DNA of 64,000 nt, taken from Trichosphaerium sp. ATCC 40318. Taxonomy: Eukaryota > Protista > Tubulinea. A program made the position numbers and the translations under genes. Positions 9,291 to 31,698 of this stretch are shown here, one piece after another. How positions within the stretch are numbered: the stretch's first letter is position 1; every line of letters starts with the position of its first letter. A model generated the notes under the pieces. That model was given only the letters and a program-made list of their open reading frames with translations. It did no database searches and was not told the DNA's origin. The DNA lies in NCBI GenBank assembly GCA_038496445.1, contig JALMLS010000320.1, positions 310,001-374,000 of the forward strand, in the 5' to 3' direction.

Positions 9291-9363
9291 GGGTGTGTGG
9301 CTTAGGCGGGAAAGCGGCCACTTTCAGTGCGGCAGGACGTGGGTTCGAACCCCACCTCACCCA
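9291..9363 (+). tRNA. tRNA with UCA anticodon (opal-suppressor-like; not tRNA-Sec architecture)
   Basis: 73-nt cloverleaf. Acceptor GGGTGTG/CTCACCC has one U-U. D stem GCTT/AAGC. Anticodon stem GCCAC/GCGGC has one A-C, loop TT-TCA-GT. Variable loop AGGAC (5 nt). T arm GTGGG-TTCGAAC-CCCAC. A73. Confidence 0.8.
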
Positions 9364-15447: not shown

Positions 15448-17261
15448 CTACTCATCAAGTACGATCCTAACAAACATAAGAAATGTTTCAAAACAAATAA
15501 TGAAAGCGCACATTTCAGGCATGTCAAAGCGACATTCGAAAGTACGTCTTCTCTTTTTCCTTCCCTCTAATGATCTCTTACTTGGCCTACTGTATGGCTC
15601 AGCCCTGTTGATATTGACAGAGTATCTAGCACATGATAAGTTAAAGACTTTGTGTTAATAAACAAGAGTAGCTAATACCCAAGATCTCTAAGTGCTTGAA
15701 CGCTTATTCGTGAAAGTGGATTAACTCCGCCAAAGTTCAAAGTAGGTGTCATCAACTCATTGTCAAACGTTGATTCTCTCCAATGCCTAAAACACAGATA
15801 GTTAGTATAATAGAAGATAGAGGTAGATGGGTGTTACGCTAGTCGACTTCCAGGACCACCAACGTTTGCTACAGGTGTTGTAGTTGCCGAAACTCCAAAG
15901 ATGTTTCTGTATTGAGCTGTAGCTAGAGGAAGGGTATAACGTGGGTCGTTACTGTTCTGGTTGATGATGACACCGCTTCTGAACAACCATAAAGGTCCAA
16001 GACCGCTGAATGAAAACAAATGAGTGTAAACCACTTTTCCCTGGATAACTTGCGTACAGTACGTGTCCCATCTCATGTCTAACTACTTCATCGAATTGAC
16101 CTCTGTTTAGAAGTGATTGAGCATCAGCGATATCAAATCTTATAACTCCAGAAATCTAAACGTGTTAATTGTGAATTAATCCAGAAAAAAAAAAGCATAC
16201 AGGAAGACCTCTTGCTCCACCACGAATTTCTCTAGGACCAGCGCTTCCAAGAACCCTTCCAGGACCGTCTATATTCATAGTTAGAGCCTCGTAGATTGTA
16301 ATAAAAACGTACCAATGGTAGGGAATGTGATATCAATGTAGAGGTCGTCTAGAACTCAGGTGATTAAAAAAAGTTGTTTGACAAATGCGCTAACCAACAT
16401 TTCTTGAGAATACGTTAGATCTTCCATTGGGTACATCAGCTGTAATGACTCTCTCCCAAAAACGTGCAGCTGTTTCTGTTTGAGCGAGCTAACGCAATAG
16501 TTAGAAAACCAAAGAAAGGCACGTGACTTACAAGTCTTGTAATTTGTGGTGTGCGAACTCCATTGAAACCCCATTCGATGTTAAATTGTCCGTCTTGTCT
16601 TACTTGAAAGAAATTAAAGTTTAAGTTTCCTGTAACGAAAGTAATCTGTATTCTCTTTGCTCCTTGAGTTATACGGCCCAGATTAACATAAACATCTGTC
16701 CACTGATTGTTTCCTAAAAATAGAAGTCACGTGTCTCTAAAAAACAAGACGATTATGTTACCTCCTGAACCGCGAAATACTGCTGTTCTGGACACAGAAC
16801 CGACTTGAACTCGGATTGTGTTAGCGTTGGTTCTCGCCGACGCAACACGAAGTCTCATGGTATAGTCAGCTGTCCTAGCGAAGACTGGGCTAGCGTATAC
16901 AAGAAACTCTGAAGGTTGAATAAAAGCAACGTGGCAGTTACCACCTTGTGGATCTGTTGTCCGTTGAAAATCCACAAAAGGTCTTGTTTGCGATATGCCA
17001 CAACCGAAGCCACCTTGTTCAAACTGTCAGTCTCTAACACAAAGAGAAAAGAAGATGATTGAAGTAGCGCTTTGTACCAAGATTGTTCCTTGAGAGTTCT
17101 CGCTTTCCTGTAAATCTTTGAGCTTGAATACGCCCAGGAAGCCTTGTATTCAATTGAGCATAAGCCTACAGTGCGTTAGCATTGAGCAAAGTTAAAAACA
17201 TGGCCAAGTAAGTTCTTACAAGCGACAATATGACTATCAACACTAGAATACTTTGGTGCAT
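15448..17261 (-). CDS. Secreted CBM6-like carbohydrate-binding module + leishmanolysin-related (M8-like) Zn metalloprotease
   Basis: Signal peptide MHQSILVLIVILSLAYA. CBM6-like LPGRIQAQRF...YTMRLRVAS...NLNFNFFQV. Protease motifs DGPGRVLGSAGP, VRHEMGHVLGLG (HExxH), HWRESTFDNELMTP and NPLSRISVQALRDLGY. Confidence 0.8.
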
Positions 17262-25187: not shown

Positions 25188-28100
25188 ATGGCGTCCAAAA
25201 CGCTAAAGAAGTATTTAAAAGAGGCCAGAGTAGCTATTAAGAATAAAAAATATGACGTAGCTCTTGATAAAGCTACTACAGCGAGTTCAATAGACAGAAC
25301 CAATGCGACGGCGTTAGTTTTAAAAGGAGCAGCAGCATCAAAGCTAAATAAACCCGAAATTGCCACAGAGAGCTTTGAAAAGGCCTTAGAATTAGATAGC
25401 GGTAATGTCACGGCGATGCAGGTACTCGAACTCATTAATAGTGATAATTATGAATTAAAACCGCTAACTGTAATATAGGGCCTCGCAGAGCTTGCATTAG
25501 CAAGCGGTAACAGTAAAACAGTAATAAGCGCATGTTCGCCGATAATGGAGCAGCTGGGGTACGTTGCTTCACGTTTGTTTGTTTTTAAAGTCGAAATCGC
25601 TAATATCGCGGACCTAAATAGATCGAAGCATCCGAAATATAAAACATACGGTAGACACGTTGCAACAGCATACGAAGAAGAAGGCGACAATGAGAATGTA
25701 ATCAAAAAAACTGCATATTCATTTGACACATTGTGACACTTTTTTTTTTTTCTTCATTTTTTTCATGTTTTTGCTCACTCTGATTTTTATAGGCGTTAGG
25801 TATATGGGAAAACGTTCTTGATGGTCTTGAAAAAATACCTAAAACAGTGAATATAAGAACAGTAGTACTTCGTAATATTGTACGACTATACACGCTAAAA
25901 GAAGAAGCAGAACTAGTTCCGGAAATCATTTCAGGTTACAAAAGAAAATACAAAAAAACTCTTACTCCTGCTGGTGCACGTTCACATGGAATTAATGTAT
26001 TAACAGTGCGAAAGGAATTAAACGAACGATTGTATGGAAAAAGTAGAACAAAGGTAAGCGGTAATGTTGAAATAATTACTGACGTTTTTTTTTAATTTCA
26101 GGTGGCTAATTATGTCGTTGAATTTTACAACATTGTTAATAAGTTGAATGCTTCTATGGATGATATAGAACTCATTTACAGATATCTTAAGATTATATTA
26201 CTACCTTGGAATTGTGGCAAACCATACTTGACAAAGACACCTGAAGATCTACTCAAAGTAAACATTGACATTTGTAACACGTTGGGAAAAAACTTATTCA
26301 ACACGAGTGGCCGAGCTATAGCAGAAAACCAATTGACCTGGTGTTTCGGCGATAATTGTGCCTTTGAAATAGATGAAGCTATTAGAACTGCATGTAGGAT
26401 GGTTCGCATAGACCCTTCTGTTCAAATCTCGTACCTATACGTTGCTCATACGTTGCTTCATGTAAGTTTTGTTTCAGATCGTATTTTTGAATTATCTTCC
26501 TTACGGCTTTTGTAACCCTTTTGATTTAGACTTCTGGGTTTGGTTCTATGCCTATAGTTAATAAGGGTATGTCTCTATTAAAGACAGTACTCAAAACTTA
26601 CCCGAACAATCCCGTGGCATTGTGCTTGATGGCGTCATGTTGGCTAGCTAAAGATAAGTTCAAATATGCAATAGAGCATGCTAAAAAAGGTCTTTTGGCT
26701 GTGAAAAGGCTATCTGAGCTTGGACTTAGCCTTAAGAAAGTTTGGACATCTCTGCACATTGTTCTTGCGACTACATTCCTCCGTTGGCGTAAGATCAAAC
26801 AAGCAGAAATGACATTCAAAAACATACTTAAACTAGCTCCAGAAAACCCTTCTGCGTTGCTTGTACGTATCCAAAACAAACCCAAAAGCTTTTGCAATGA
26901 ACAAAAACATCACTATTTAATAGTTCAGTATGTTAATGACTTGCATATAGGGCCTAGCTCAAATAGATTACTCTAGACATGACTACACTGCTTCTTTATC
27001 TCGTCTTGAAAGTATTAAGGGTGATGCAGCTAAGAAAGCAAGCATACTTGCTATGCACGCTTGGTTGAGTTACAGGAAGATCTGTGGAAACTCAGCAGAG
27101 TCTCTTGAAGAAATTTCTAAACCAGCAAAGCCATCAAAAGAAAACCTTTACATACTCATTGAAGCGAAAAACCGTATTCAAGCTTCTATTGATGAAAGTG
27201 AGAATCCAACACCTTTCTTATATTACCGACTCGGAAAACTCTTTTGGGCTATTCAAGGTACGCTCAAGAAGACCTAAGTACAATTGCTAACGTGCACCTC
27301 CGCTCTGGAGTTCAAAAACGTTGACAAACACCTTGATTTTTATCTGTTTGAGCTAACTTGAGTTAGAGAACCTCAAGGCTTACAATGCTTGGGCTACTTG
27401 TATTAAGCAGTGCAGAGATATATCACGTGGCCGATTGACTTTTCCTCTATTTGAAGACGTTTCTCTTGCACACTATACAATACGACGTATTCATGGTCAA
27501 GCTTTGGCTTGGGTTGGTGTTTACTACAATGCCACTGCTTCGAGTGATAGATCAATGGACTGTTGGGCAATGGCTTTGAGTAAGAATATCGGTAGTAAGA
27601 TTGCAGCACGTGGAATGAGTCGTATGTATATGAAGAAAGAAGAGTTCGATAAGGCTGCTCAAGTTCTTCAACGTGTTTCTGATTTAGGACATATGTGGCC
27701 AAGAAAACTTCTTGGTGCAATACAACTCTCTTTGAGGTCATTTGATTTAGCTATTACTAATCTTAATCAATGGATAAGAGGTCATCCGAACGATGACAGA
27801 GCGTGGGTGCTACTAGCGGAATGCTACACGTAAGTATTCGGATTTCTTTTCTTTACAGTTTTTTTGTTACAAGTATAGGCTTGCTTACAAGTTTTAAGGC
27901 GTCAAGGAAAGTACAGGGCAGCATCTAGAGTTGTTGAGAAAGCTCAAGCAATTGAAAGCAGTGATGAAAGTGTTAAGCTGCTTCTTGCATATAATGCTGC
28001 ATTACTTCATGCTAAGTTGGGAGAGACAGAATTGGCTATTGGTCAACTTGAGAAGATCCCAGAATTTCTCCCTGCCTTGAAGATTCGTGGAGATGCTCAT

Positions 28101-30549
28101 TTTTCTCTTTTCCGTAGATTTTATGAGGAGACACGTTATGAACGTAGTAGAGAAGAATTAATCAAATCAGTACGTTCTTTTCTAAGTTCACTAAAAGTCA
28201 AAACATTTCACTTCGTACTTGCCTTGTGTTTAATGTTTTGTAGGTTGATACGTATGTCAAATGCGTAGAGCATAAAGAAGGTGATATGGGCGTTATGCAT
28301 AAGGCTATGGGTGATGCACTTACTTGGTGTGTTGCTTTTCAAACAATGGATTCTTCGTGGACTTTGTCTATGCTTGAAAGAGGAGAAAAAGCTTATTTGA
28401 GTGCTCTCGGTTTCCTCAGTTCCTCAAAAGCTAAAGCCAAAGGTCATTATGATTTGGGGCGTAATATATACTTGCAATATTCGATTACAAGGAGTGATAA
28501 TGATAAGAGACAAAAAGCCTTTGAACAATTTAAAATCTCTGTTTCTTTGAACCCACAATCTCCTAAATATTGGAATGCACTTGGTGTTTCTGCTTTAGAC
28601 CCAAATGTACAACAACATTGTGTATTAACTGCTCTTCATCTGAACAAACAAGTACGCTTTACTTTTTTCCATTTTGGCGCACGTGACCTAACATATGGTT
28701 TCTTTTTATAGTATGGTCCAAGTGCTGGAAATATTTCGTTATTACTTGCGAACAAGCAAGCTGATTTGTCGACTGTTGGAAACTGGACTCTTGGTATTGA
28801 TAAGAGAGGCGTTGGATGGGCTTCACTTGCGCAAACAGGAAGTGGTAAAAATGCACGTAATGGGTGGTATCAAGCGTACAAGATTGCACCACATAATGTA
28901 AGTTGCGATTGATCTATTTTTTTTGTTTGGTTTGTTGTCAACATCATTAATGGTACTTTAGACCACTTTTTGTATCGGATTTTTACAGAGCTGGATTAAT
29001 GCACCTAAAGGGCCTCCTCAACTAAATATGGCTTCTATTAGATTGTCATTGTTGTCTAAAACAGATGAAAAAGCTAGAATGCTAGCGTCAGTTTATCATG
29101 AGAGTAATGGACGTTTGGAACTGGCAAAAGGTAAGTGCCTTTGCGACTTTTTCTTCTTGTGCTTGTGTTGTACTTAAATTTACTTAGAGGGTTACAATAT
29201 TGCGTCACAAAGTAAGAATGCGACAGTATCTTTGTTCGGGACTGTGGGAACTGCTAGAGTACTTGTTAAACAGAAACAGTTCATCAAAGCAAGAGAATTG
29301 CTTGAAAGTAGTGGAAAAGGTCATCGAAGTACAAAGCCACTAGTTGCTCTTTGTCACCTTGGTGAACGGTATGTTGACTTATTTTTGTGAAGAATACATT
29401 GATTATCATCTATTCTTTACTAATCTACTCGCATTAGAGACTTTGCAAAGGCCTCAACTTCATTTCAAGACGTCCTTAAGACATATGAAAAGAAACTTAA
29501 CGAAGACCAAAAATATTACCTTCAATCATGCTTGAACCTCTCTGATGCTAATGCCAAGAACCCTGGACTTATAACTAGACTTAAGAAAGCAGTTGCAGAC
29601 GCGAAAAGTAACCAGGATAAGTTCTCTGAGTCTCTTTACCTCGCTGCTGTTTCTTACCACATTGGCGATATCTCATTGACAAAGGAAGCTCTTAAACAGT
29701 GCTATGGATTTAGTGCAAACCCTAAAACACCTGAAACAATCGTTAGAGATCCTAGATATTGGCTACTCTGCTTTGCAGTTAGTCCAAACGCTAAGACGCT
29801 CATAAGAGGTTTAACTATTACAAGAGCTACTATTCTATTAGATCTTGTACCTGGTGCTTTATTGGATGATAAAATGCGTCCAGGAATAGCTGAAGGTTGG
29901 CCTCAACTTGATGCTTTGCTTCAAAAGATTAGTAGCAGGTCTTCGAGATACAACTCCGTTATTTTCCATATCAGAGCTTTGTACTGTGTTATTGTTGCTG
30001 ATAAAGCACATGCTGGGCTTGTTTATGCTCAGCGCGCACTAAGAAGATGTCCTGAGGATGATTCACTTCGTGCTACATTGTTCTTGGCTAGAAGCAAGAT
30101 GGAAGAGAAAGATAGAGTTGAGGCTCTTACAAAAAGGCTTTCTAAGCTTAAAGAGTCATTCGAAAAATCACCAACTCTTTCTGGTTTACTCGTACGTCAC
30201 GTGATAACGTTTTTATTATCTTTTTAATTTAATTCGCATCACGTGGTTGTTGATATTTATTACGTGTTTTTAGAGGATGAGTGTTGTTTTCGATCAACTT
30301 GGTAAGGCGAAGGCTTCTGAGCATTGCCTAAAGAACGGAATGAAATGGTTCCCTGAATCAAAGAATGTAATCGCAACTTATACAGCATTGCATTATGCTA
30401 ATGCAAAGAAACACAGTGATTCTGTTAGTGCTCTTAAAGGTGTTACCTTGAAGCGTATCGAAGCACTGAAGAGCGCTTTAGAATCAATGAAAAATGGGAT
30501 GCTCAATGACGAAGTACTTCAACTGTTTAACATGCCAGGTTCTAAGTAA
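25188..30549 (+). CDS. SKI3: Superkiller complex protein 3 (TTC37/SKI3-like) TPR protein, multi-exon
   Basis: N-terminus KTLKKYLKEARVAIKNKKYDVAL...ALVLKGAAASKL...FEKALELDSGNVTAMQGLAEL closely parallels the TTC37/Ski3 N-terminus. Later WNALGVSALDPNVQQHC and TPR arrays. Confidence 0.75.
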
Positions 30550-30752
30550 AATCTTTTTGATTCAAGACTACTCCAAATTATCGATCTTACTTGTGTTTTG
30601 ATGCTATGCGGGTTACTAGCTTTGGTTTAGGCTGTTGCTTGGCTGAGTTATTTGCAACACATGTTTTTGTAAGGTTTTGCGCAAGTTCTGTTTTCTTTGG
30701 GGTGAATTGGATGTAAGTACTTTTTGTGTATTCGGGTATGAATACAGTAGTT

Positions 30753-30760
30753 AAAAAAAA
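30753..30760 (-). terminator. Candidate RNA polymerase III terminator (T8) closing the permuted-tRNA structure
   Basis: TTTTTTTT follows CACCG at the 3' end of the base-paired flank. Confidence 0.5.
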
Positions 30761-30842
30761 CGGTGGTTGCGTCTCGTGCCTCCTATCAGTTACGACAGCC
30801 AGTAGTACACCATCGAACACCGACAAGATACGAAGTATTAAA

Positions 30843-30915
30843 ATTGAGCTTAAGTCAATCGCCTTAACCACTTGGCTACTCTCCTGTTGATAGGAGAGGC
30901 GGGATTCGAACCCAC
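30843..30915 (-). tRNA. Circularly permuted tRNA-Leu(UAA): 3' half upstream of 5' half
   Basis: Minus strand reads GTGGG-TTCGAAT-CCCGC-CTCTCCT-A [TCAAC] AGGAGAG-TA-GCC-AAGTGGTTAA-GGC-G-ATTGA-CT-TAA-GC-TCAAT. The 7-bp acceptor and 5-bp anticodon stems are perfect, with a Leu-type D loop and A73. Confidence 0.85.
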
Positions 30916-31698
30916 GAGAGTTTGTTTTTTGTTATTTGGTGTGACAGCATACTGGGGGTATGAGACACGGTGACTGAGATTATTGCACCGCACTGAAAGA
31001 GAGAACCAACACGTTTAAATACACGTAATAGTTGACAGAAAAAAAAATTGTGGGATTAGTTTTCTGCTAAAATTAGCAAAACGCTGATTCAATGGCTTCA
31101 ATATAAAAAAATTTGGTACAACACAAGCAAAACTGGCTACAAAAGAGTGAATTTGTCGGTTTTTTTTCATGTGGTTTCGATAGCTTTATTAATATTATTA
31201 TGTAAACTTCTTACAGAAAAGTATTTTTTCTATTCGTTCAACTTAAACTGTTTTCGCTTCCAACAGGTTTATTTCGCAAAACTGAAATAAAGGAGGAAAA
31301 AAGCGAAGAAATTTGAAGACCTTATTACAAATAACTCTATTAAAACTAAATTTAAGGCTACATAGTGATAATACTAGGATGTAATAGGCTTTAATGAAGC
31401 ACGTGGACCACGTGAAAACGGTAAGGAGAGAAAGTTGACACTGTAAAGTTGAAAAGAGCATACTAATACTTGAACGGTATTATTTATATTTTGCTGCGTC
31501 ACAGCCATACCTTTACTCGCCACGTATGCTATATATGTTTGTGTTTGGGGCAGTAACTATATATGATGCAATTTATACTATTGCACGTTTACACAATGTA
31601 GAGCAGAAGCAACGTTTGGTTAGTATTCATTGAATCGTTGACAATTAATGAATCAATGTTGTTTTATGACTTTTAAAAAACACAAATATATTGACTCT

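Follow-up and report, generated by a model that had tools for sequence, protein, structure and literature searches.

On the minus strand of the window (the whole 64,000-nt stretch of DNA that was analysed) lies a self-contained, externally promoted small-RNA gene of ~236 nt, running from 30991 to about 30756, which spells a complete tRNA-Leu with its back part ahead of its front part. This order was read directly from the sequence. The unit, or near-identical copies of it, is abundantly transcribed, and it belongs to a transcribed family of permuted units. We tentatively favor, with a probability of roughly 0.45, a reading in which the unit is the precursor of a working tRNA that is matured by a BHB-independent route. 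The features of the gene are as follows, in the order of transcription.

31048..31055, minus strand: DUSE-like upstream box TCCCACAA, starting 64 nt before the RNA 5' end.
31014..31021, minus strand: TATA box TATTTAAA, starting 30 nt before the mapped RNA 5' end.
30991..30991, minus strand: RNA 5' end G30991, at the X1 contig stop.
30916..30990, minus strand: leader of 75 nt, with the 5' strands of the terminal helices, the A-rich linker and CUCUC.
30991-86, 30974-72, 30969-62, 30953-43 and 30942-38, minus strand: leader helix strands, from folding.
30937-30921, minus strand: A-rich single-stranded linker, followed by CUCUC at 30920-16, the single-stranded stretch being 22 nt in all.
30891..30915, minus strand: 3' part of the tRNA, closing with the discriminator A73 = A30891 (sequence read).
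30915-30899, minus strand: T arm GTGGG-TTCGAAT-CCCGC, 5 pairs, one of them U-G.
30898-30892, minus strand: acceptor 3' strand CTCTCCT (sequence read).
30886..30890, minus strand: intervening sequence TCAAC, which with A73 closes the acceptor stem into a 6-nt loop.
30828..30885, minus strand: 5' part of the tRNA, with the acceptor 5' strand, D arm, anticodon arm (UAA) and complete variable hairpin.
30885-30879, minus strand: acceptor 5' strand AGGAGAG, 7/7 Watson-Crick with the 3' strand.
30876-30861, minus strand: type II D arm, following U8 and A9, with a 3-bp D stem (30876-74 with 30863-61) and a G18G19 loop.
On either side of the anticodon loop, minus strand: anticodon stem ATTGA/TCAAT, 5/5 pairs.
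30852-30850, minus strand: UAA of the anticodon loop CTTAAGC, in which U33 and G37 are present.
30838-30828, minus strand: variable hairpin AUAC-UUC-GUAU, complete, with a 4-bp stem, preceded by UUUA after the anticodon stem.
30761..30827, minus strand: trailer of 67 nt, beginning with CUUGUC and going on with the terminal helices' 3' strands; a side hairpin lies at 30798-83.
30753..30760, minus strand: T8 run, a Pol III-type terminator (sequence read).

The elements of a type II tRNA-Leu are all present and canonical, including A73, the 7/7 acceptor, the D arm with G26 after it, U33, G37 and the TTCGAAT T loop, and the stems of the tRNA body contain zero mismatches. A preliminary description of this locus had reported the permuted order on the minus strand (T arm, acceptor strand and A73, then TCAAC, then acceptor strand, D arm and anticodon arm) together with pair counts for the acceptor (7/7), anticodon (5/5) and T stems (5/5 with one G-U); direct reading confirms the order, and every count is right. 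Its proposal to re-order the halves in silico also gave a clear answer, with ARAGORN calling tRNA-Leu(taa) on 394 of 625 joins and no other identity on any of them. Joining U30828 to U30917 in silico yields an 88-nt type II tRNA-Leu with a 4-bp variable stem, in which C30916 occupies the C48 position that pairs with G15. In native order, neither ARAGORN nor Rfam at gathering thresholds makes a call at the unit, as had been anticipated for standard tRNA finders.

When both strands of the 64-kb window were scanned, the unit came out far beyond chance. Only one other site combines a 5/5 T stem with a 7/7 closed acceptor, at 16413 on the minus strand, and that place is devoid of the T-loop consensus and of a D arm; the unit is the only window site at which a canonical T loop and a D arm are added to the closed acceptor. 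No other tRNA-Leu gene was detected in the window by ARAGORN, Rfam or the both-strand scan, and neither a front half upstream of the unit nor a T arm or acceptor strand downstream was found.

The preliminary description had placed the break in the variable arm. The junction does fall within the variable region, but it lies 3' of an intact variable hairpin and not inside the arm: the break sits between the variable hairpin and the T stem, at about position 47/48. Published junctions (15/16, 20/21, 37/38, 50/51 and 59/60) are all outside the variable region (PMC3978253), which supports the idea of a new permutation class. The idea of a new lineage is supported as well, our literature search having found no permuted tRNA gene reported from Amoebozoa; reviews of 2014 and August 2026 list permuted tRNA genes only in red and green algae, a nucleomorph and Thermofilum.

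In the published permuted tRNA genes, a BHB motif at the junction is read by the splicing endonuclease, a TATA-like box stands upstream and a T stretch downstream with nothing between, and the intervening sequences measure 1-74 nt, that of the B. natans nucleomorph being 5 nt (PMC3978253). When all strict and relaxed trailer/leader geometries were enumerated for the unit, no BHB was found near the junction. The strict search returned 4 matches against 0.47 per shuffle, which represent one sliding alternative helix register deep in the terminal stem; the relaxed searches returned 6 and 3 against about 1.2-1.3 per shuffle, mostly from the same sliding series, and the variable regions left by the two relaxed matches closer to the junction would be implausible. 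The circular route of maturation, which the preliminary description gave for the known genes, is not borne out for the unit: the junction lacks the motif, and the assembled contigs of four RNA runs, which cannot show rare or short forms, contain no joints, circles or CCA-tailed ends. That route is something we infer by analogy rather than a finding.

Promoter, ends and terminator frame the unit as a gene of its own. The upstream box TCCCACAA fits seven of the eight positions of the printed motif [AT]CCCA[AT]AA, found about 60-63 nt upstream of Dictyostelium ncRNA genes (PMC3188802, PMC7919456). There are 13 WCCCAYAA sites in the window against 7.1 +/- 2.4 expected (2 of 100 shuffles reach 13), and the one at 31055 alone is followed by a TATA box, at a distance of about 34 nt; since the box was recognised after sequence reading, its DUSE-like identity is suggestive only. 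At the other end of the gene stands the T8 run. Apart from it, the unit has a single run of at least four T (TTTT, 30843-40), which is read through in the RNA contig. Taken together, the DUSE-like box, the TATA box and the T8 terminator make Pol III the likely polymerase. A scan for bacterial-type promoters and terminators returned nothing, as expected in a eukaryote.

The RNA ends agree with this frame. A contig of run X1 stops at 30991 and continues past it into template-switch-oligo-like sequence (CCC followed by GTACTCTGCGTTGATACC, plus strand), which places the RNA 5' end at G30991; the contigs of run X8 stop at 30982-30984, and one of them continues into Illumina adapter. Leader and trailer are paired right out to the two ends of the RNA, in a 6-bp terminal helix followed by helices of 3, 8, 2, 11 and 5 bp, and their cofold reaches -40.8 kcal/mol, compared with -32.6 +/- 3.4 in shuffles (4 of 300 shuffles reach -40.8). 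The terminal stem is linked to the tRNA body by CUUGUC on the 3' side and by the 22-nt single-stranded stretch on the 5' side. For the whole RNA, the unconstrained fold is -66.0 kcal/mol (z -2.7), and enforcing the cloverleaf comes at no cost (-66.5).

Transcription was followed in four public RNA runs, all of them assembled contigs, in which ends, strands and rare or short forms are not reliably readable, placed on 30300-31500. In X8, coverage is confined to 30809-30984 of this 1.2 kb, at depths of 100-1170, and is zero over the remainder. The exon of the neighboring gene (30300-30476) is covered at a depth of 5-10 in X1, X2 and X6 and at zero in X8. One X8 contig (30809-30953, 145 nt, depth 778) crosses the tRNA body in the permuted order, independently of the genome assembly. 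The preliminary description had raised the possibility that the order is an assembly artefact, with the halves wrongly placed; this contig keeps the same order and nothing was found in favor of an artefact, which we regard as extremely improbable.

The same contig differs from the window by two substitutions, A36>G, which turns UAA into UAG, and C32>A, and by two length changes, with an A missing at 30839/38 and an additional A in the A tract at 30924. It most likely derives from a near-identical paralogue of the UAA unit. It is the sole contig across the anticodon among the four runs, none of which contains a UAA-anticodon contig. Both substitutions fall within the 7-nt anticodon loop out of 145 nt, for which the chance is about 0.002, and such a confinement is the pattern that would be expected if the copies were kept for decoding different codons.

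These observations bear on a reading in which the unit is a functionless relic of two tandem tRNA-Leu copies 5 nt apart, the first having lost its front and the second its back, with the remnant lying by chance behind a promoter and being transcribed from it. Tandem identical tRNA genes give such a junction trivially, as a metagenome locus (L043) illustrates, and an origin of the unit from a tandem tRNA pair is plausible. The trailer opens with UCGGUGUUCGA, similar to the true T arm UCGUGGGUUCGA and located where the T arm of a conventional gene would be, and no processed product appears in the contigs. That resemblance, however, is not significant, as 31% of shuffles reach its score. A decaying remnant is also hard to reconcile with stems free of any mismatch, with promoter boxes, 5' end, end-to-end leader-trailer pairing and T8 run that frame the unit exactly, or with a second copy, known from the RNA contig, that keeps the same architecture with another anticodon. 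We therefore consider it rather unlikely that the unit is such a relic. The trailer and leader were also examined as decayed versions of the missing halves and this was rejected, local alignment being not above shuffles (P 0.31 and 0.90), with only the position of UUCGA in the trailer suggestive. A tRNA-derived SINE or dispersed repeat was rejected too: the window holds a single copy, the longest word shared by the flanks is 7 nt with no target-site duplication, and the B box precedes the A box in the unit.

Further pieces of RNA come from the leader. In X1 and X8, two runs labelled as different organisms, leader pieces start at the 5' end, reach about 30921 and continue in 9-12 non-templated A. 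They hint that an endonuclease cuts about 5 nt ahead of the T stem and that the freed leader is then adenylated. Alternatively, the A runs could reflect oligo-dT priming on the A-rich linker or a length variant of the A tract; three mismatches of the X1 contig would fit oligo-dT priming.

A separate observation concerns the CUCUC that precedes the T stem (30920-30916), which repeats the first five bases of the acceptor 3' strand (30898-30894, minus strand). Either copy is able to pair with GAGAG of the acceptor 5' strand, and the leader pieces end (about 30921/30920) at the very point where the alternative helix would start. Such a 5-nt identity has a chance of about 1 in 1000, although it was spotted post hoc, after sequence reading.

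We propose the precursor reading because the tRNA features are flawless, the paralogue diverges in the anticodon loop only, the gene layout is that of known permuted genes and the leader is possibly cut. The transcript would contain, in order, the leader, T arm, acceptor 3' strand, A73, UCAAC, acceptor 5' strand, D arm, anticodon arm, variable hairpin and trailer, with leader and trailer paired into a long terminal stem. Leader and trailer would be cut off beside the variable region, and a ligation, most plausibly of U30828 to U30917, would join the two cut ends. The acceptor loop would then be opened by RNase P and tRNase Z, and CCA would be added after this opening. Cutting, joining, loop opening, charging and translational use are all steps that we infer for the unit. 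In favor of a precursor, the TATA-like box upstream, the T stretch downstream and the absence of any signal between the halves are as in published permuted genes. Against it, the unprocessed form is abundant in the RNA contigs, which also fits a stable RNA, and the same genome has a conventional tRNA(UCA) gene at 9291-9363, so that permuted copies need not be essential.

The proposed opening of the acceptor loop has a bacterial precedent. The M. smegmatis YrlA RNA has a 7-bp closed acceptor stem that is cut by RNase P and CCA-tailed in vivo without ligation (PMC4201824). In light of this processing, a 7-bp acceptor with a 6-nt loop, like that of the unit, would be a credible substrate for loop opening, whether joined or unjoined elsewhere. 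The same precedent speaks for a two-piece tRNA, in which RNase P and tRNase Z would open the acceptor loop and CCA would be added while the break in the variable region would never be sealed, the acceptor stem and the leader-trailer helix holding the pieces together in translation. The missing BHB, which removes the known cue for cutting and joining, points the same way. On the other hand, were the terminal stem to act as the extra arm, the unit would have no need of its small but complete variable hairpin; the synthetase or the ribosome may not accommodate a long extra helix and a 22-nt linker at 47/48; and the leader pieces that stop at about 30921 point to removal of the leader. With no supporting reads in the contigs either, we judge a tRNA working in two pieces to be improbable.

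The abundance of the unprocessed form invites a different interpretation, namely that the unit is not a precursor at all but a stable ~236-nt Pol III tRNA mimic, equivalent in a eukaryote to the YrlA Y RNAs of bacteria and phages. The closed acceptor and the terminal stems would then be kept, and the tRNA-shaped domain would bind tRNA-handling proteins. The layout of YrlA is indeed matched, with a T arm, a closed acceptor stem and a D arm inside a stem of the RNA ends (PMC4201824), and the Rfam YrlA model (RF02553) aligns over 30935-30835 with 25.9 bits and an E of 0.0037, a score that remains far below the gathering score of 69. The paired 5' and 3' ends with a U tail, as in Y RNAs, and the absent BHB motif also suit a mimic. 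However, YrlA has no anticodon arm, and its exit stem, which stands in that position, binds Ro60 through a conserved motif (PMC4201824), whereas the anticodon arm of the unit is full, has a canonical 7-nt loop and is accompanied by the variable hairpin. The GNCGAAN0-1G of bacterial Y RNAs is absent from 30991-30753. Animal Y RNAs carry GGTCCG as a stem motif, and this motif too is absent from the unit. Moreover, a mimic would have no clear need for A73, U33 or G37, and the substitutions of the paralogue are confined to the anticodon loop. We regard a stable mimic as possible, though on the unlikely side.

A metagenome scan for T-loop/D-loop patterns returned 120 loci, mostly ordinary adjacent tRNA genes. 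There were no relatives of the unit among them, and none reached the Rfam YrlA threshold. About ten loci, on prokaryote-like contigs, carry tRNA-like modules with closed acceptors. Those at L006:8538, L028:1945, L056:3940, L057:1052, L074:1917, L081:774 and L118:8490 consist of a T arm, an acceptor closed by a short loop, a D arm and often an anticodon-like arm, with no front half upstream or back half downstream. An SPFH/Band 7 gene lies just downstream of the module in L006 and L074, and two closed-acceptor modules occur in series in L074 and L066.

Elsewhere in the window, a conventional 73-nt tRNA gene with anticodon UCA (9291-9363, plus strand; Rfam tRNA 53.4 bits) shows that the genome also carries ordinary tRNA genes. 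ARAGORN labels it tRNA SeC, for which it is too short. It is preceded by ACCCTAAT at a distance of about 54 nt and by a TATA-like GTATATT at about -27. Twelve nucleotides, CTTTCAGTGCGG, are shared by the region where the unit starts (30999-30988, minus strand) and the anticodon arm of this tRNA (9321-9332, plus strand), probably by chance (BLAST E-value 1.4). Next to the unit, a multi-exon gene on the other strand (27435-30549, plus) ends about 200 nt away. By eye, its exons look like helical, TPR-like repeats; one exon scanned against Pfam gave no match. In a look-up directed at orthologous loci, the 231-aa exon of this gene had no homologue at E 1e-5 and the neighboring F-box ORF was not on record.

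Permuted tRNA genes have been reported from very few lineages, and all are thought to depend on BHB and the tRNA splicing enzymes. If true, a transcribed permuted family in an amoeba-like heterotroph would differ in three ways, by its break in the variable region, its lack of a BHB and its snRNA-type external promoter. One option is then that a second way of cutting and joining a tRNA exists; the other is that eukaryotes own a class of regulatory RNAs shaped like tRNAs and comparable to YrlA in bacteria. Should the two pieces instead work unsealed, the unit would be a nuclear tRNA made naturally of two pieces, and the genome would have a whole family of them. Part of the tRNA-like genes of a genome can escape standard tRNA finders. 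In the Physarum genome paper, the Tyr1, Lys1, Ser2 and Asp1 tRNAs, known from RNA or earlier annotation, were missed by tRNAscan-SE (PMC4758236), a gap that would be worth re-examining if slime-mould relatives carry permuted tRNA genes. The sequence of the unit is absent from the published tRNA table of Physarum polycephalum, whose own tRNA-Leu(UAA) is of conventional form and differs from it.

The unit can be compared with three known systems. Like the dictyostelid DUSE-dependent ncRNA genes (Class I RNAs and snRNAs; PMC7919456, PMC3188802), it has a CCCA box about 60-64 nt upstream, a T run after the gene and paired RNA ends. Those RNAs contain no tRNA domain, and the box of the unit differs from the printed consensus at one position. 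The small dictyostelid DUSE-dependent ncRNAs are 42-65 nt long. YrlA RNAs are bacterial or phage-borne, whereas the unit is eukaryotic, of Pol III type, equipped with an anticodon arm and a variable hairpin and devoid of the Ro60 motif.

The closest comparison is with the permuted genes of Cyanidioschyzon merolae, prasinophytes, the Bigelowiella natans nucleomorph and Thermofilum pendens (Soma 2007; Maruyama 2010; Chan 2011; review PMC3978253). Unlike these, the unit has its junction at about 47/48 without a BHB motif, a long leader and trailer (75 and 67 nt) in a multi-helix stem, a 22-nt single-stranded stretch before the T arm, a DUSE-like box and an amoeba-like, non-photosynthetic eukaryotic host; the known genes mature via a circular intermediate, whereas the unit is known from the gene and assembled RNA contigs. 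In both, a single transcription unit has the 3' part ahead of the 5' part, the acceptor stem is closed by a short intervening sequence (5 nt in the unit), and the re-joined halves form a canonical cloverleaf. Class II tRNAs including Leu(UAA) are often permuted among the known genes, and the unit is likewise a Leu(UAA). What it has in common with the permuted-tRNA family is not the processing signal or the junction positions but the gene layout.
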